Assembly: GCA_965202585.1 (NCBI GenBank)
Contig: OZ241831.1
Location: 41,664,001 to 41,728,000 of the forward strand
Source: Thalia democratica
Lineage: Eukaryota
DNA: 64,000 bases
Reading direction: 5' to 3'
Part shown: one piece after another, positions 4,399-50,332 of the stretch
Layout: each line of letters starts with the position of its first letter
Position numbering within the stretch: the first letter of the stretch is position 1
Notes under the pieces: model-generated
Told to the model about the DNA's origin: nothing
What the model saw: the letters and a program-made list of their open reading frames with translations, nothing else
Database searches by the model: none
Program-made: the position numbers and the translations under genes

Positions 4399-5766
4399 TT
4401 TTGGTTTTAGTGATATGCAAAAAATATTATGGTTCTAGTTTTATTAACAATTTTAGGTTACTTTTATTCAGTTTGTTGTTTTAAAATGATTTTAGCTACA
4501 CATAGAATACCTAAAAAACTTATAAACATTTATTGGAATCAAAATTTCATTGACTAATATAGTTTAGTCTTAATAAACCATGTAATATTTAAACAGTTAG
4601 TAGGTTTAATTTACTGTTTTGTAGATAATAAATTATAGTACTAAATAACTTTTAAACCTAGCTTACAATACCTACAAACAGAATTCAAAAAGAAGAGAGC
4701 GGTTTGTTAAAAAAATAAAATTAAGAAATTATTTATATCTAAGTGTACTTCGACATAACTAGTTTTTTTTAAATTTTAGTTTAAATTAAGTAAATAATGA
4801 ATTGCCACGGTTTGGATTTGCAGCGTTCTTTTGCCTTTTCATGCAAGCTGTCTGTTGAAAATGGTATCTGTTCTTGAGTCTTAGTACGTACTTTACGAGA
4901 GTGCGTACCTGCTCTATGTATGTAGTGTAGCTGGTAAACTTTATATACAATGAGCAAGATTAATACAAGGATAAATAAGTGCATGTGATGAAAAAAAGAA
5001 TAGTTTGACTCTCTTGAGGTAGCCAAAATACAATATTTTCAACAGCAACATTTGAGCATCATACGCGTATACATAGTGTTACACTATTAAGAGAGGCACT
5101 TGTAGTGTGTCAGAAAGCGAGCTGACGACCTAGTCAGCTTAGGGATTTTACAATGTAAAGCTACAACGAATAAATCCCTAGACGTCTAAGCGGGTAGACG
5201 TCGTGAAGGCGGGTTGTGTGTTAGTGTGTTTGCAGGCATACAGATTATAGCTTGAGTCGACTTGGCCGTCGACTCGAGCTAGAGTCGAAAGACCGCAGCT
5301 AGGCGATCAAAGGTCGTATAGCAGACCTCATTGAATAAGCACGAAGGGAACGTAAAGCGAGAGCAAGGCACGTACCGTCCTAAGCAAGCCGTTAAGCATA
5401 AAAGCCGCACTCTCGCAAGGCAGTATATGAACGAGCTCTGACATGATTCAGCCCAGTTGAAAGTACGTTTGAGTGCAAAGATGAATTGATTAAGGAATGC
5501 ATTTCTAGAAGTGAAGCTTCGGACGGGCGACTGAAGCAGAGTAGGCGAGGTACTAGAAAATGCGAAGGTGTAGCACTCAAAATGTAACATGTAAAAAAGC
5601 GGCATAATCTCATGGTCGCTTTCAAAGTCAGAGGTCAGTTGAAGCGAAATGTTTTGGAAGGGAAGCAGGAGCTTCGAGAAAACATTTGTAAAACAGCGGG
5701 AGGTCTGTTTTTTCGAAAAGTTGTTGAAAATGAATTTTTGGGTTGTGAGAAGGGTGGAGAGAATAA

Positions 5767-5870
5767 AGAAAGAAAAGTTGGAAAAATTTTGAGCAAAAAA
5801 GCCGTCCGAATTCGCCCGCGGGCGAATTCGGACGGCTTTTTTGCTCAAAATTTTTCCAACTTTTCTTTCT
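5767..5870. repeat. Perfect 104-bp palindrome with no spacer
   Basis: 5767-5818 (agaaagaaaagttgg...gaattcgcccg) is the exact reverse complement of 5819-5870, checked base by base. Confidence 0.97.
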
Positions 5871-5873
5871 ATA

Positions 5874-6067
5874 ATTTTTCAAAGGTGTTCGACAAAAGTC
5901 GAACGCCTTTTTTTTACCCAAAATTTTTTTTGGCTACCTCAAGAGAGTCAGAGTTTTTTGCCTAGTACTATATATTTTTCAAAGGTGTTCGACGAAAGTC
6001 GGATGCCTTTTTTTTACCCAAAAATTTTTTAGGCTGCCTCAAGAGAGTCAGAGTTTTTTCCCTAGTA
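5874..6067 (+). repeat. Two 94-bp direct repeats (period 100), each with a 13-bp hairpin followed by a T-tract (also 27606-27799, 50071-50264)
   Basis: atttttcaaaggtgttcgac[a/g]aaagtcg...cctttttttt...cctcaagagagtcagagtttttt.cctagta at 5874-5967 and 5974-6067. Confidence 0.93.
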
Positions 6068-18800: not shown

Positions 18801-20882
18801 TCGAAGAATCGAAACGTAGATGCCTAATAAAGTTTTTCATACTGTAATGAAATCAATATTTGATTTTATTATTTTAAATAAATAAGTTAAAAAGGAGTTT
18901 TTTGTTTCGACGGCGTAAAACATTCATAATTCTTAGAAATAAGTTATTTTAAACCGAAAACAATAATGAGCTTTCTGAAAACAATTTTCCAAGTTTTTAA
19001 AACATCATTGTTTACTCGAAGAAGTTAGTTTCTTTCCAGTGCGTGTATATTGGTGTTTGTGTTTCAAATACGCGTTAGTTAGTTAAGTTTTTGTGCGTTT
19101 CGTACGCCGTCTTAAGTCACGATGATGATCAACGCAACATCAAGTTAAGTTCAAGCCAATGAAGTAAAATCTACATCGAAAAAAGTATACGTTTTCTAGT
19201 GAAGAATAAGTTACACATTGTCAAGCAACCAGAACACCTAGTCGTGTCTAAGAACATGAATCTAAACGAGTTCCTTGATCGAACAATTCATTGTCGAGAC
19301 CATAAGTATTTTTGCATACATTTTATTATAATAGACCATTTGTTTATTAACTAATACAGTTCTTTCTTGAGTTTTAAAATGCTACTTGACATTAATTCAT
19401 AGAGCGTTTCAATCATGACTTGGTAACAAGTTACTTTAAGTTTTGTAACTTTAGTATTGTAAGCTGCTTTTAAGTAAAGCAGTCAGTTTAGCTTAAGTAC
19501 TTAGAAACCATGTTTAAGACGATAAACATAATCAGTTTAATAAATATTGTTCTGTGGTTATAATACTTTACTATGTTTTCAATAATATTTAATTCAATCT
19601 AAAACGATGTAAAAAATGTTTATCTTTAAGAAGTAGCAATAATTGGGTTATAACTTAACAATACTAAATACAAAAAAAAAAATTGTTTAAAAAATAATGA
19701 AGATTAACAGTTGTACTCCAAAAGCAAAAAATAAAAAAAGGATCAAAAAAAATATATGTTTGTTAAAAATAAAATCTATTAAAAGGTATAGAAAATTTAT
19801 ATGTATAAATTTTTTTTGCCCTTATAACTATATTTTAACCACTAAAAATACACCTAAAATTGAGTTTTTATTCTTAATAGTTTAAGTTTACTAGTTGTAT
19901 AAAAGGTTTTTTAATTTGGTCATAATAGGACCCGTAATTAACCTGTTTTCAAGGGCAAACTCTTATTGTCTTGTTTTGTCGAAACCATGTTACAAGGTTT
20001 TATAAAAATTTCGTAATATTATCTTTGGCGGGCCGGATTTCACAATGTGCTTTTTTCACATTTTATATTGTAAAAACGTGTTGCAAATTTATCTAATTTT
20101 TTTTTCGTACTGATTGTTTAAGACGTTGTGGTTAGTTTTAACAAGTTACTGATTTTATTTTGCTGAACTATGATTTTTTTATTCTATTTGAAAATTACTT
20201 CTATAATGTCTTAAAATAAATTATAAAAGTTATTGCTAGTTGCTTATTTTACAGAACTAACTGCACGAAAACTTTTCTCTATAGTTATTTTATTTAATAA
20301 GTAATATTATATATATTAAAACCTTAGAAACCAATCATAGAAAAAAAATAAAAGGACTTCTTAAATGATAACAAGTGTTATGCAGAAATTTGAGACATGA
20401 TTAAATCAAAAACATAATTATTTAAACAAAAAAGTAAAATGGATTTTAAATAACACTTATCAACTACTAGTTTTTATGATTGTTGTTTGTCGCTTATTTT
20501 ATATATTTATCGTATTTTTTGTTTTTATTTTTATACGTTTGCTTATCTTAGTTAAATTACTAATCAATTTATCTATAATTATGTAATTATAAACTGGTAA
20601 TCTGTCTCTAATTGATTTTGCTTAACTATGCTAATTAGTATTAATTGAATATTTTCTAATTAAACCTCTAAATGTTTATTTACTCAAAATTTATCTTTAA
20701 AATTAGTTGCTAACAAAAGAAGTTGATAATTATTAGCTAAAATCGATTTTACTTGTTTGTTTATAAAAATATTTTTTTAAAGGAATCATGTCTCAAATTT
20801 CTAATTAACATATGTATTACAAAAAAGTTATATAGTAGCAAGTAAAAATAATTATGTTATGTTTATTTTATAATTTGTACGC

Positions 20883-21838
20883 TTAATTTTTTTCGGTCTC
20901 TAGTGACGTATTTCTCGATAAGCAGTTTTTTGAATTACACGCACAATCAAAATCACGAAAATACCCTTCTCCGTACCAAATGAAGAGTTGCTCACTAGCT
21001 CTGATAGCTTTTTTGCTGATGATAAAGTTCCTAGGAATTCCATTGATCAGAGCGTACTCTGTCCTGCAATTTAATTTATCTTCGCAATCGTGGTTAATGA
21101 ACCTGGTATGGTTGCCCATTGCGCCCGCGTCAATATCAAAATTCGTGCATGTGCTGAAATAGTAGTTGGTAGCCCCTTTATTCTCACGCCACCTTTTAGT
21201 CTTTTCTTCTTTTGAAATAAGCTCGCCTGTATACTCTCCTATTATTGAGTCTGAAAATCAACAAATAATAAGTTTAATATCCAAGCTAGTAGTTTAATTT
21301 AAGAATTATTTAGTCAAAATTTTCATTATAACAAAAAAAAGTTGTACATTGAAAAAAAAGTTAAACAATGAAACTTACTTGCTGGTATAGCATGCTTAGC
21401 GAACAGCCCACGGCCCATTTTACCACTAAGATTGTCCACATAAAAATGTTTTTCAGGATCGTCAAGGCAGTCATGATTGAACTTTTTTAAACTATCCAGT
21501 TCAATAAAAGAAGCTACATGTTTTATCTCATCCAAATAAGTATCGCTTCCAATCACGAGGTGGTTCGTCCAAACATGATGCTTCTCTGTATTGAAATGAT
21601 AGTAAGGATCAAAAACGTCGTCAGGCCCTTCCTTGAATGTCCTTTTAACTTCGAATTTTCCCTCCAAAGCAATTTTCTTCCATTTTTGCTTGCTTGACGA
21701 TCGTATTTTAATGCTGAGTGGTGCAAATTTTTTCAACGTATTCCTGATTGGAACACTTCTTATAACGGCCTTCCTTGCTGTCTGCTTTTTGTAGCTTTTT
21801 ATTCCTGATTGCTTATAAAAACTTGTTTTTACTGGCAT
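20883..21838 (-). CDS. SET-domain lysine methyltransferase with post-SET Zn motif, 275 aa, 2 coding exons: complement(join(20883..21250,21379..21838))
   Basis: Donor GCAA|GTAAGT at 21378 and acceptor TTTTCAG| at 21251 define a 128-bp phase-1 intron that joins the two track ORFs in frame (460+368=828 nt). Product reads ...MGRGLFAKHAIPANSIIGEYTGELI...NYYF...IDAGAMGNHTRFINHDC...AIRASEQLFIWYG...FDCACNSKNC, i.e. GxG, EYxGE, RFINHxC, catalytic Tyr and CxCx4C motifs. AATAAA lies ~16 nt after the stop (20862-20867). A probable 5'UTR intron spans 22141 (CAG|GTATGG) to 21870 (CTAAC...TTTATAG|). Confidence 0.92.
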
Positions 21839-23561
21839 TTTATAGTTGAGAAATTTAGCATATAAATGACTATAAATATGTTAGATAAGTAATTTAAGAA
21901 ACTTATACTGTTATAATATATTTTATATCCGCAGTATGTATCATAAGTTTATCTAAAGCTTGAAAATTTCGAATGATACTTCAACCTTTTTCATATAAAC
22001 CAGGAAAAACAAATGAGTTATTAGATAAAAATCTAAAACATTATACATAAAGAGTAATATACCAGATTTTATAAATAAAACAAGTTATTATTAAATTGAG
22101 TTTTAGAAAATTCTGAATTTTAAAATGTTATTATACCATACCTGATTCCCACATCAACAGTTTTTTTTTTTAAGTGTTAAATAAACAAATTAAAATAGCA
22201 ACTATTATCAAATCCCTGTAAAAGATGATTAATAATTGATTAAGAAAATGAAGGTAGAGATGGATACCGAACTCAGATACAAAAACCAAGTTGTAAGAAA
22301 TGCAAGAAATGATAATAAACTATCAACCTAGGAAAAGATAATTGTCAATTAGAATATAAAATGCAATTGAAGCTTACAAAAAAAGAATAAGTTACAGCAG
22401 ATAATGAAAAATAAACAGCAGGTCTTATCAGTAATGAGAGAAAAAAGTATACTGTGAATCATTGCTAGTGAAACTGCAAAGCATGAAAAAAATCTGTTAT
22501 CTAATGTTAACAAAATTGAGAACTTTCAAAGGAATTTCAATTTTTAAACACAGGGTGTATCAATTGAAAGATAATGAGAAATCTAAAAATACTAACAAAG
22601 TATTACTAGAAAATAGTATTACTGTTCAACAAATTTATTTAATATTATTATTAATTTAATAAAGTGTTGGAAGGAACAAAAAAGAAAGTTAATAAAATAA
22701 TAAACATTTATAAAATTAAACTTGTTAAATATAACAACTTTAAACAAAATGACTGTTCACTTGACTTATTATATATATACACTCCTAAAACATAAATCTA
22801 ACAACAAATATAACTACATAACCTGAAACTTTATCTATACTAAGTTAACTTAACACTAACCTTAACAACTGAAAACAACTTTTTTTATGTTCGCATGCGT
22901 GTAATTGAACATTTGTGGTTTGTGGTGTGACCTCAGAACTCGAGACAACACTGTTGGGCATAGTATTTTGAGAGAATTTAGGGTTTTATAACCCGCGACG
23001 AGTTCAAAAGACTTTTTTGCTTAAATAATTTTCAAATGTTTAGGCTAACCCAGAACATCGACACCTTGTGATGAATTTCCCGTATTTTTTTTAAGTCTTG
23101 TTTTTCTAAAAGCGAAATGGTGCAATTCCGTGGATTTGAACTTACCAGGAACAAAAGAACTAGAAAAAACTTACCAGGAATAAAAGAAGGCAGGGATATA
23201 AATCTAAAAAAAGTAAAGAAAACATTTAATGCTAAAGTTTAATATAAATGAGGTTAAAATTAAACTATGTTTCTCAATAACAGAGTTTTTATTTGTTCTC
23301 TTTCTAACAATAAAATAAACAAAGAATACTTTTCAAGTGAGTCATATGATTTTTTAAATTGTTTTTTTCGAAATACTTTTTAATTTTTGTTATGATCAAT
23401 ATAAAGCTTTTGATAGTAATAGTGGTATTCTAATTACAGAACTTAATTTTGATATTGAGACTGGACAAACTTTTGTTAGTTCACAATACATATCTAGTAA
23501 CGTTAATCCATTTTAGTTTATAGTAAATGAAACTGAAAAACTACAAATATAATAAGATAAA

Positions 23562-26821: not shown

Positions 26822-27867
26822 AGAGAGGCACTTGTAGTGTGTCAGAAAGCGAGCTGACGACCTAGTCAGCTTAGGGATTTTACAATGTAAAGCTACAACG
26901 AATAAATCCCTAGACGTCTAAGCGGGTAGACGTCGTGAAGGCGGGTTGTGTGTTAGTGTGTTTGCAGGCATACAGATTATAGCTTGAGTCGACTTGGCCG
27001 TCGACTCGAGCTAGAGTCGAAAGACCGCAGCTAGGCGATCAAAGGTCGTATAGCAGACCTCATTGAATAAGCACGAAGGGAACGTAAAGCGAGAGCAAGG
27101 CACGTACCGTCCTAAGCAAGCCGTTAAGCATAAAAGCCGCACTCTCGCAAGGCAGTATATGAACGAGCTCTGACATGATTCAGCCCAGTTGAAAGTACGT
27201 TTGAGTGCAAAGATGAATTGATTAAGGAATGCATTTCTAGAAGTGAAGCTTCGGACGGGCGACTGAAGCAGAGTAGGCGAGGTACTAGAAAATGCGAAGG
27301 TGTAGCACTCAAAATGTAACATGTAAAAAAGCGGCATAATCTCATGGTCGCTTTCAAAGTCAGAGGTCAGTTGAAGCGAAATGTTTTGGAAGGGAAGCAG
27401 GAGCTTCGAGAAAACATTTGTAAAACAGCGGGAGGTCTGTTTTTTCGAAAAGTTGTTGAAAATGAATTTTTGGGTTGTGAGAAGGGTGGAGAGAATAAAG
27501 AAAGAAAAGTTGGAAAAATTTTGAGCAAAAAAGCCGTCCGAATTCGCCCGCGGGCGAATTCGGACGGCTTTTTTGCTCAAAATTTTTCCAACTTTTCTTT
27601 CTATAATTTTTCAAAGGTGTTCGACAAAAGTCGAACGCCTTTTTTTTACCCAAAATTTTTTTTGGCTACCTCAAGAGAGTCAGAGTTTTTTGCCTAGTAC
27701 TATATATTTTTCAAAGGTGTTCGACGAAAGTCGGATGCCTTTTTTTTACCCAAAAATTTTTTAGGCTGCCTCAAGAGAGTCAGAGTTTTTTCCCTAGTAA
27801 TGATTATTTTATCAATTTCACTGATGTCTTAAATTTTGAACGTTGCTGCCGAAAGGTTAGCACCATT
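26822..27867 (+). ncRNA. Candidate structured RNA element, copy 2
   Basis: Same sequence as 5090-6135 (offset 21732). Confidence 0.5.
27499..27602. repeat. Perfect 104-bp palindrome, copy 2
   Basis: Same sequence, offset 21732. Confidence 0.97.
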
Positions 27868-36856: not shown

Positions 36857-37502
36857 GTCAAGGGACAGATATTTTACCACCAACCTAGATCAATGACAAG
36901 GATATCGCAAATGTGAAAAACTTTGGATACCTTAGCTTCAGACTCCCACCCGTTGATCAAACTCATAGTTAGACACAGAAATAACTAGTCGCATAGGTAA
37001 GGCCTCAGGCACTTTCGCTTGTTTGTCTGCAAGAGTATGGGGTAACCAAAGTTAAGCATTCTTACAAAGTCTAACGTTTATTGTTCCTGTGTATGCAGTA
37101 CTCTGCTATACGGTAGCGAAATAAGGATATTTACTAGCGTCCTGGAGAAGAAAAAACAATACCTTTCATTAACAATGCCTTTGTCGCATCCTTAGAATTG
37201 CATGGAATCAAAAGATCACCAACGAGGAAGTGTTGAGACGTACTTGTGATACTACCATGTGGTTTACCCTCAGTCAGCGCAGGTTTCGCTGGGTCGTTCA
37301 TGTTCTGAGGATGAGTGCTGAGCGAATCCCAAAGTTTGTCAATTGCACACGCTACAGAGGTCGTCCAACATTACGTTTTAACGACGTATGCAAGCGTGAC
37401 CTAAAAAGCTGGAATATAAGAACTGGTGAATGGGAATCGTTTGCAAATGACCGTGCCAAATAAAGATCTACTGTTAACAAAAGTCTGAATGAAAGGAAAA
37501 AA
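36857..37502 (+). mobile_element. RTE LINE relic, copy 2
   Basis: Offset 21732. One private SNP seen at 36919 (a vs c). Confidence 0.85.
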
Positions 37503-42614: not shown

Positions 42615-43570
42615 TTAATTTTTTTCGGTCTCTAGTGACGTATTTCTCGATAAGCAGTTTTTTGAATTACACGCACAATCAAAATCACGAAAATACCCTT
42701 CTCCGTACCAAATGAAGAGTTGCTCACTAGCTCTGATAGCTTTTTTGCTGATGATAAAGTTCCTAGGAATTCCATTGATCAGAGCGTACTCTGTCCTGCA
42801 ATTTAATTTATCTTCGCAATCGTGGTTAATGAACCTGGTATGGTTGCCCATTGCGCCCGCGTCAATATCAAAATTCGTGCATGTGCTGAAATAGTAGTTG
42901 GTAGCCCCTTTATTCTCACGCCACCTTTTAGTCTTTTCTTCTTTTGAAATAAGCTCGCCTGTATACTCTCCTATTATTGAGTCTGAAAATCAACAAATAA
43001 TAAGTTTAATATCCAAGCTAGTAGTTTAATTTAAGAATTATTTAGTCAAAATTTTCATTATAACAAAAAAAAGTTGTACATTGAAAAAAAAGTTAAACAA
43101 TGAAACTTACTTGCTGGTATAGCATGCTTAGCGAACAGCCCACGGCCCATTTTACCACTAAGATTGTCCACATAAAAATGTTTTTCAGGATCGTCAAGGC
43201 AGTCATGATTGAACTTTTTTAAACTATCCAGTTCAATAAAAGAAGCTACATGTTTTATCTCATCCAAATAAGTATCGCTTCCAATCACGAGGTGGTTCGT
43301 CCAAACATGATGCTTCTCTGTATTGAAATGATAGTAAGGATCAAAAACGTCGTCAGGCCCTTCCTTGAATGTCCTTTTAACTTCGAATTTTCCCTCCAAA
43401 GCAATTTTCTTCCATTTTTGCTTGCTTGACGATCGTATTTTAATGCTGAGTGGTGCAAATTTTTTCAACGTATTCCTGATTGGAACACTTCTTATAACGG
43501 CCTTCCTTGCTGTCTGCTTTTTGTAGCTTTTTATTCCTGATTGCTTATAAAAACTTGTTTTTACTGGCAT
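42615..43570 (-). CDS. SET-domain lysine methyltransferase, copy 2: complement(join(42615..42982,43111..43570))
   Basis: Same splice sites and identical ORF translations as copy 1 (offset 21732). Confidence 0.92.
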
Positions 43571-49286: not shown

Positions 49287-50332
49287 AGAGAGGCACTTGT
49301 AGTGTGTCAGAAAGCGAGCTGACGACCTAGTCAGCTTAGGGATTTTACAATGTAAAGCTACAACGAATAAATCCCTAGACGTCTAAGCGGGTAGACGTCG
49401 TGAAGGCGGGTTGTGTGTTAGTGTGTTTGCAGGCATACAGATTATAGCTTGAGTCGACTTGGCCGTCGACTCGAGCTAGAGTCGAAAGACCGCAGCTAGG
49501 CGATCAAAGGTCGTATAGCAGACCTCATTGAATAAGCACGAAGGGAACGTAAAGCGAGAGCAAGGCACGTACCGTCCTAAGCAAGCCGTTAAGCATAAAA
49601 GCCGCACTCTCGCAAGGCAGTATATGAACGAGCTCTGACATGATTCAGCCCAGTTGAAAGTACGTTTGAGTGCAAAGATGAATTGATTAAGGAATGCATT
49701 TCTAGAAGTGAAGCTTCGGACGGGCGACTGAAGCAGAGTAGGCGAGGTACTAGAAAATGCGAAGGTGTAGCACTCAAAATGTAACATGTAAAAAAGCGGC
49801 ATAATCTCATGGTCGCTTTCAAAGTCAGAGGTCAGTTGAAGCGAAATGTTTTGGAAGGGAAGCAGGAGCTTCGAGAAAACATTTGTAAAACAGCGGGAGG
49901 TCTGTTTTTTCGAAAAGTTGTTGAAAATGAATTTTTGGGTTGTGAGAAGGGTGGAGAGAATAAAGAAAGAAAAGTTGGAAAAATTTTGAGCAAAAAAGCC
50001 GTCCGAATTCGCCCGCGGGCGAATTCGGACGGCTTTTTTGCTCAAAATTTTTCCAACTTTTCTTTCTATAATTTTTCAAAGGTGTTCGACAAAAGTCGAA
50101 CGCCTTTTTTTTACCCAAAATTTTTTTTGGCTACCTCAAGAGAGTCAGAGTTTTTTGCCTAGTACTATATATTTTTCAAAGGTGTTCGACGAAAGTCGGA
50201 TGCCTTTTTTTTACCCAAAAATTTTTTAGGCTGCCTCAAGAGAGTCAGAGTTTTTTCCCTAGTAATGATTATTTTATCAATTTCACTGATGTCTTAAATT
50301 TTGAACGTTGCTGCCGAAAGGTTAGCACCATT
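49287..50332 (+). ncRNA. Candidate structured RNA element, copy 3
   Basis: Same sequence as 5090-6135 (offset 44197). Confidence 0.5.
49964..50067. repeat. Perfect 104-bp palindrome, copy 3
   Basis: Same sequence, offset 44197. Confidence 0.97.

Follow-up and report, generated by a model that had tools for sequence, protein, structure and literature searches.

A tandemly amplified two-exon gene for a predicted stand-alone SET/post-SET protein in the pelagic tunicate Thalia democratica

The stretch of DNA considered here, which we call the window, comprises 64,000 nt of a chromosome-scale contig of Thalia democratica (OZ241831.1, positions 41,664,001 to 41,728,000 of the forward strand; G000:C7:41664001-41728000 in the genome numbering used below) and carries on its minus strand, at 21838..20883, a two-exon gene whose predicted product is a small protein with a SET domain and a post-SET motif. 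Specifically, exon 1 (21838..21379, 460 nt) starts with the ATG at 21838 and provides codons 1-153 together with base 1 of codon 154. Its translation (21379..21838, minus strand) comprises a basic disordered tail, a family-specific N-terminal region and the first strands of the SET domain (GRGLFAKHAIPA). The exon ends on the consensus donor CAA/GTAAGT and is followed by a spliceosomal intron of 128 nt (21378..21251, minus strand, GTAAGT...TTTCAG, phase 1, 20% GC); 128 nt beyond the donor lies the pyrimidine-rich acceptor TTGATTTTCAG/AC, at which the phase-1 frame resumes. Exon 2 (21250..20883, minus strand, 368 nt) runs from the last two bases of codon 154 to codon 275 and the TAA stop codon (20885-20883), and carries the remaining part of the SET domain and the post-SET motif. 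An in-frame TAA (21881..21883, minus strand) closes the frame 45 nt upstream of the ATG, and an AATAAA polyadenylation signal (20862..20867, minus strand) is found 16 nt after the stop codon. Joined computationally, the two reading frames give 828 nt, that is 275 codons plus the stop codon. The first-pass annotation of this locus had proposed that two open reading frames (ORFs) splice into one protein of 275 amino acids (aa); this model is borne out, with 21379 and 21250 as the exon ends.

Transcription, polyadenylation and splicing at the homologous site are established for a paralogue of this gene. The paralogue mRNA, L011 (protein P0176), is a 1003-nt contig from an ocean metatranscriptome, which carries an AATAAA signal and a visible poly(A) tail, and the AAATAAACATAACAT context around the AATAAA of the window gene recurs ahead of this tail. 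It starts 81 nt before its ATG with a 5' untranslated region contiguous with the genome, shows an in-frame stop codon upstream of the ATG, as read from the sequence, and encodes 282 aa; the first bases of its 5' end resemble what we take to be a template-switch oligo. L011 matches the genome at 99%, approximately 160 kb from the window, where it aligns as two blocks separated by a 125-nt gap exactly at the homologous intron site. In addition, the full-length metatranscriptome relatives P0002, P0175, P0176, P0178 and P0179 contain complete ORFs of 270-295 aa and are continuous over the predicted joint (...FAKHAIPAN-SIIGEYTGELIS...), with the Asn of the interrupted codon present, and relatives on DNA contigs terminate where exon 1 ends.

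The paralogues L006-L010 retain a homologous GT..AG phase-1 intron of 123-130 nt. When six paralogues with 56-95% protein identity were compared, all of them showed the same intron and intact ORFs of 272-279 aa, with pairwise ratios of nonsynonymous to synonymous substitution rates (dN/dS) of 0.26-0.60, a range that indicates purifying selection on these genes. Because the homologous intron is missing from L011 at precisely the predicted joint, and because all checked paralogues retain both the intron and an intact ORF, splicing of the window copy can be strongly inferred. An exact search for the spliced junction in metagenome contigs returned nothing; the same search also missed the known paralogue mRNA, and its outcome is therefore uninformative.

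The coding sequence has a GC content of 38%, compared with 20% in the intron and 24-26% in the 2-kb flanks. The coding sequence had been described as richer than its flanks in both GC and CpG: the first part holds and the second is true of the raw CpG count only, with an observed/expected ratio that is not unusual (0.94 in the coding sequence, 0.85 in the whole window, 0.57 and 1.24 in the two flanks). The GC excess over intron and flanks is ordinary for exons of an AT-rich genome. CpG enrichment was also considered as a sign of foreign origin and was rejected, the observed/expected ratio being ordinary.

The gene is not a singleton, and belongs to an amplified multigene family. A second whole copy is present in the window (43570..42615, minus strand), identical at 956 of 956 bases, and altogether five copies, 100% identical to one another, are spaced by 22465, 22465, 21732 and 22465 bp. 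The window holds almost three tandem units of approximately 22 kb (boundaries ~20883/42615) of an array at G000:C7:41.62-41.73 Mb. Units are 99.2-100% identical; outside the gene, neighbouring units share 99.2-99.8% and are distinguished by an indel of 733 bp, and the 956-bp SET gene shows zero differences among its five copies. Apart from a GC-rich island, the rest of the unit contains no ORF of at least 75 aa except a 77-aa ORF with a GTG start (37230-37463). Each unit has one such island (27011-27697, 5279-5965 and 49476-50162), with a GC content of up to 47%, which is co-amplified with the SET gene; its overlapping ORFs of 189 and 117 aa lie on opposite strands and have translations that are not protein-like.

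Genome-wide, the exon-1 peptide matches 65 places in 802 Mb, the large majority of which are free of stop codons. Further arrays were found on C7 (41.57-42.08 Mb and 9.1-9.6 Mb), C5 (14.12-14.19 Mb), C9 (28.0 Mb), C1 (41.6-41.75 Mb) and on unplaced contigs, and several paralogues are expressed. When public relatives were compared with the genome, P0176 and P0012 matched at 91-99% and P0009 at only 60%, from which it follows that related species have the family as well. All close relatives are unnamed proteins from marine metagenomes or metatranscriptomes, and the ten closest clusters inspected contain no NCBI or UniRef member or name, in agreement with the proposal that the gene is lineage-specific. 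A literature search retrieved no description of a SET expansion in tunicates. The family is absent from the named protein records inspected and from the literature searched.

Some features of these arrays and relatives deserve separate mention. The copies are spaced by approximately 10 kb on G000:C5:14.12-14.19 Mb and by approximately 15-20 kb on G000:C7:9.42-9.58 Mb. In many copies of the latter array, the SET exon is interrupted in frame by one or two TGA codons; these copies may be pseudogenes or have an extra intron. The coding sequence of a distant P0012-like member (G000:C1:41747819-41749818), 91-95% identical over most of its length, lies in at least four blocks, which means that subfamilies differ in their number of introns. 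L011 is a mosaic of the adjacent paralogues L013 and L014 (G000:C7:41841660-41842688 and 41846866-41847894): in exon 1 it shares 98.6% with one copy and 91% with the other, and in exon 2 it shares 99.2% with that other copy and 93% with the first, a pattern that points to gene conversion or recombination, or to another copy or allele, a third one, outside the assembly. Finally, P0001, P0151 and P0152 (802-803 aa, from marine metatranscriptome contigs of approximately 2.5 kb) contain two complete family units in one ORF, that is, a natural tandem fusion in which the N-terminal region, SET domain and post-SET motif are doubled behind an acidic N-terminus.

The exon-2 peptide matches the Pfam SET profile (PF00856) over profile positions 15-105 with E = 7e-16 and 59 bits, the cut-off being 22.4 bits, and full-length paralogues cover positions 1-105 at 72-87 bits. 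All the catalytic SET motifs and the four zinc ligands claimed by the first-pass annotation (NHxC plus CACNSKNC) are present in the joined protein. Specifically, the SET core comprises GRGLF from residue 142 (GRG 142-144), GEYTGE from residue 158 (Y160), the S-adenosylmethionine (SAM)-binding NHxC motif N206-H207-D208-C209 (21084..21095, minus strand), and IWYG from residue 244, with Y246 as the catalytic tyrosine. The post-SET motif CxCx4C follows as C256-A-C258-NSKN-C263 (20922..20945, minus strand). In the alignments, these elements correspond to the NHSC and the post-SET of NSD3 and MLL1, and the proposed zinc ligands are C256, C258, C263 and, as the fourth, C209. The GxG, the Y of GEYTGE, the NH and the catalytic Tyr of xYG are invariant or nearly so in the family (alignments A1 and A3); among the post-SET cysteines, no variation occurs at C256 and C263 and almost none at C258 (alignment A3). 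This conservation of catalytic and SAM-binding positions spans subfamilies with only 35-50% identity. The sequence RFINHDC in place of the usual NHSC, to which attention had been drawn as atypical, is indeed present; it is not a meaningful deviation, as the position of the D is occupied by S, D, T or R among family members.

The description of the product as a small stand-alone SET/post-SET protein stands: its 275 aa comprise Pfam SET as the only domain, together with the CxCx4C motif. The absence of a Cys-rich pre-SET/AWS region and of any reader domain is likewise supported. Only one of the seven Cys residues of the whole protein (C124) lies ahead of the SET core, and a Pfam scan of the full-length paralogues, opened to E = 1, returned only SET above the cut-off and no AWS, Pre-SET, N-SET, PHD or PWWP match. 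The place of the AWS/pre-SET is taken by the family-specific N-terminal region (residues ~33-140; 21419..21742, minus strand; LKKFAPLSI ... FDPYYxxNxxKHHVWTNHLV ... CLDDPEKHFY), which contains no Cys cluster. A hidden Markov model (HMM) of residues ~38-142 matches family members only. The region has no sequence match in Pfam or PDB, the PDB profile matches beginning only at position ~120-130, and its Atlas scores are at most 0.81, which is noise level. Modelled alone with AlphaFold2 (AF2), the exon-1 peptide reached a predicted local distance difference test score (pLDDT) of 46, too poor for a structure search. As this peptide is not confidently folded by itself, the N-terminal region is probably not an autonomous domain, and we claim no new fold for it. 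A second N-H-D-C tetrapeptide (FNHDCLDDPE; residues 121-124, window 21467-21478, minus strand) occurs in the same region; its Cys is retained only in the closer subfamilies, and its likeness to the catalytic NHDC at 206-209 is probably coincidental.

The fold was assessed on the paralogue P0176, which is 69% identical to the window protein. Its AF2 model (pLDDT 76.6, predicted template modelling score 0.75) shows residues 1-37 as disordered and residues 40-140 as packed on the SET core at pLDDT 57-90. A search with VIA placed the model nearest to SETD2 (Z 16.0, root-mean-square deviation (rmsd) 3.7, 185 residues aligned), ATXR5 (Z 15.3, rmsd 3.6, 180 aligned) and NSD2 (Z 15.0, rmsd 3.0, 168 aligned), followed by Set2 and SUVH6 (both Z 14.8), EZH2 (Z ~14) and G9a (Z 13.9). 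The alignments to SETD2 and Set2 reach back to residue 39, at an rmsd of 3-3.7 Å. A comparable result was obtained with Foldseek, with E ~1e-12 to SETD2 and NSD and an rmsd of 2.0-2.7 Å over 117-142 residues to NSD and EZH2; both programs return the SET families en bloc. At the sequence level, the exon-2 peptide matches NSD3 (1.5e-11), EZH1/2, NSD1 and SETD2 in PDB at E ~1e-11, with the post-SET included. A 30-member family profile matches MLL1 (1.2e-29), NSD2/3 (6e-29), EZH2 (5e-27) and SETD2 (1e-26), all within profile positions ~120-282.

By comparing these data with the known classes, several likenesses to SET2 enzymes (NSD1-3, SETD2, ASH1L, plant ASHH; H3K36) become apparent. This class shares with the family the common SET core motifs and a post-SET CxCx4C whose fourth ligand is supplied by the cysteine of NHxC, it gives the best single-sequence PDB matches and the best structural matches, and the nearest named database matches outside the family are ASHH4 and NSD-type proteins. 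However, SET2-class enzymes carry AWS, PWWP, PHD or SRI domains and exceed 1000 aa, whereas the family shows none of these domains in its 275 aa; its N-terminal region is unrelated in sequence to that class, and the family profile scores MLL1 slightly above NSD, so that SET2-class orthology is not established. The SET1/MLL class (KMT2A-D, Set1; H3K4) provides this top PDB match of the family profile and likewise has its SET and post-SET at the extreme C-terminus. In addition, the tail of the window subfamily copies H3 residues 4-9, which include K4, the substrate of the SET1/MLL class. On the other hand, neither Pfam nor the profile search of PDB gave a significant match to N-SET (Atlas 0.80, noise level), and no WIN motif or FYR domain was seen in the family. 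The nine-Cys Zn3 cluster of the SUV39-class pre-SET has no counterpart here, as there is no Cys cluster before the SET domain and no Pre-SET Pfam match. A family SET HMM separates members, with 133 bits or more, from all other proteins, none of which exceeds 109 bits. By sequence, the family is best described as an orphan subfamily of post-SET-bearing SET1/SET2 type that fits no known SET class. Animal SET-domain enzymes that carry a zinc post-SET are, nearly without exception, large proteins guided to chromatin by reader domains and partner complexes.

Taken together, these data make it likely that the locus is an intact two-exon nuclear gene for an active stand-alone SET lysine methyltransferase, one of at least five identical tandem copies within a lineage-specific family. 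Since the catalytic and SAM-binding positions are conserved, the genes are under purifying selection and paralogues are expressed, an active SAM-dependent lysine methyltransferase is the simplest reading and the most likely activity of the product. The enzyme would act on a basic, histone-tail-like substrate, most plausibly histone H3, and its disordered basic tail might enter the substrate groove, of its own molecule (cis) or of another one (trans), and there be automethylated or serve as a pseudosubstrate. Tandem amplification would serve dosage, a need for which is suggested by the near-identical tandem units.

The one clue to the substrate comes from the basic tail, which in the window protein contains K18-Q-T-A-R-K23 (21770..21787, minus strand), equal to histone H3 residues 4-9, and also S-G-I-K14-S. 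The position of KQTARK is unchanged even in paralogues with no more than 56-61% identity, and the motif also occurs in P0168-P0172 and P0176; P0176 contains it twice, and the tail of P0009 reads KQTARKTGGKARK. A complex prediction was carried out with the tail of P0176 (residues 1-37) against its own residues 38-282, in the presence of SAM. The tail-groove complex scored 0.86, compared to 0.65 for the best control, an unrelated 37-residue peptide; in the calibration, 51 of 78 solved complexes and 2 of 108 mismatched pairs attain 0.86. At least 66% of the contacts are common to the runs, with a partner pLDDT of at least 55. In this model, tail residues 7-19 are predicted to contact Y171, N193-Y-Y-F and I255-W-Y-G, the lining of the lysine channel. 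That the protein's own tail occupies its own substrate groove is a plausible, if tentative, reading of the model.

Precedents exist in G9a/GLP and SETDB1, SET enzymes reported to methylate H3-like motifs in their own N-terminal parts (PMC2887955; bioRxiv 10.1101/2025.10.22.683908), and in G9a the methylated histone mimic recruits HP1 (PMC2887955). The likeness consists in a short copy of the H3 tail around the target lysine within the enzyme's own N-terminal part. The difference is that the present motif is an exact six-residue copy of H3 4-9, placed on a near-bare catalytic domain and found in one subfamily only.

A further proposal, which we regard as rather unlikely, is that the pelagic-tunicate lineage amplified, to dozens of tandem copies, a minimal 'writer plus built-in substrate' module, a SET/post-SET enzyme devoid of every targeting domain, whose N-terminus, as a copy of the H3 tail, would work either as a pseudosubstrate switch or, once automethylated, as a dock for chromodomain readers. 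A less likely layer of this proposal would be that the core was exchanged with Chlamydiota-type bacteria. If the proposal were true, the module would be a histone-independent methyl-lysine signalling unit, made in bulk from gene arrays as histones are. Beyond this proposal, the family provides a chordate relative with an amplified set of bare catalytic modules and a new N-terminal region without a Cys cluster. If active, these proteins would be compact natural tools for studying the minimal requirements of substrate choice in the SET1/SET2 type, the regulation of writers by histone-mimic tails and the need of an animal for such a dosage. The family also shows that named protein databases still lack large, expressed gene families of these pelagic animals, the tunicates of the open water.

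Several points weigh against an active, tail-regulated enzyme encoded by a truly repeated gene. As regards the gene, no transcript closer than ~69% protein identity to the window protein was found, a search for sequencing runs returned no RNA run of this organism, and the three runs that include the locus contain contigs that cross the intron without the 21378/21251 joint; these are DNA contigs, and therefore have no bearing on expression. The identical 22-kb units could partly be an assembly effect, and dN/dS ratios of 0.3-0.45 are relaxed for an essential enzyme. As regards the substrate, the first-pass annotation had left specificity open, and rightly so: homology names no substrate, MLL1, NSD, EZH2 and SETD2 score near-equally on the family profile, and specificity is therefore unreadable from homology. 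As regards the tail, KQTARK is confined to one subfamily and absent from distant subfamilies, and the tail varies between subfamilies. The margin of the complex prediction over its best control is minimal (+0.21, with +0.20 needed), peptides and disordered chains lie outside the calibration, and the outcome may reflect solved complexes of SET domains with H3 peptides that the model remembers. In addition, the prediction is centred on I13/K14 of TGIKS (SGIKS in the window protein), and not on KQTARK.

Among the other explanations, it appears unlikely that the proteins are catalytically idle binders or decoys using the groove and the H3-like tail, or act by non-histone methylation, with the amplification reflecting conflict such as germline drive or defence. 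The relaxed selection (dN/dS 0.26-0.60) would suit this explanation, as would the rapid turnover apparent from the many subfamilies, the copies with stop codons and the fused double-SET transcripts, the ampliconic near-identical arrays, and the variation of the tail by subfamily. It is opposed by the invariance or near-invariance of the SAM-binding and catalytic residues and of the post-SET cysteines, which is as expected for an active enzyme.

The first-pass annotation had also raised horizontal acquisition. Such a transfer between a Chlamydiota-type bacterium and the animal lineage, in either direction and followed by gain of the intron and the post-SET and by amplification, appears quite unlikely. 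The chlorovirus vSET is a minimal stand-alone SET protein; among IMG/VR viral contigs, 34 pattern matches were found, none of them a relative. In bacteria and viruses, minimal SET proteins (Chlamydia NUE, PMC2904774; bacterial SET review, PMC3980110) are likewise small and single-domain. A search of bacterial genomes for GNHTRFIN together with [IV]GEY[TS]GELI returned 46 loci, mostly stand-alone SETs of Chlamydiota/Verrucomicrobiota, and the family shares with such bacterial proteins the small, stand-alone format as well as GNHTRFINH and IGEYTGELI; in a protein-language-model search, small Chlamydiota SET clusters rank first (0.95). In a quick maximum-likelihood tree of 108 SET cores, the family is monophyletic (Shimodaira-Hasegawa-like approximate likelihood-ratio test (SH-aLRT) 95) and separate from the NSD-like rows, and 21 family rows, 21 bacterial stand-alone SETs and P0028 stand on one side of a branch with SH-aLRT 96. 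However, the bacterial rows were ascertained by those two motifs, and when the 17 columns of these motifs were dropped the topology stayed and the support fell from 96 to 67. In an approximately unbiased test, a grouping of the family with the NSD-like rows was not rejected (p = 0.127). Bacterial identity to the family is 30-39% in most cases, no better than that of eukaryotic NSD and MLL. The bacterial SETs end 0-15 residues past the SET core, and so have no post-SET, and their N-terminal parts match the family N-terminal HMM only at E > 1. The nearest row outside the family, P0028, is a 272-aa stand-alone SET with a post-SET, on a 23-kb contig whose sparse gene spacing, read from the gene list, is eukaryote-like. 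The window gene differs from SET effectors of chlamydial type in its spliceosomal intron, its post-SET motif and its location on a eukaryotic chromosome-scale contig.

An origin as a retrocopy, suggested by the first-pass annotation, or as a fragment of a large multidomain SET gene (NSD, SETD2, MLL or ASH1 type) with its upstream exons lost or unseen would suit the short, compact gene and the proximity of its SET core to SET2-/SET1-class enzymes in sequence and fold, but is extremely improbable, since a processed copy would have no intron, while a phase-1 spliceosomal intron within the SET domain is conserved in every checked paralogue and the copies arose by DNA-level tandem duplication of ~22-kb units, and since a fragment is contradicted by the full-length L011 mRNA, in which an in-frame stop precedes a coding region for only 282 aa, by the in-frame stop 45 nt 5' of the window ATG, by the family-specific N-terminal region without AWS, PWWP, PHD or N-SET match, and by the gap between members and all other proteins on the family SET HMM.

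Finally, a mitochondrial COX1 gene was noticed on a small contig of the same genome (G000:C1833:8315-9631), with five TGA codons read as Trp, and degraded nuclear COX1 copies with many stop codons are present at G000:C4:56844236-56845159 and 56943094-56944224.

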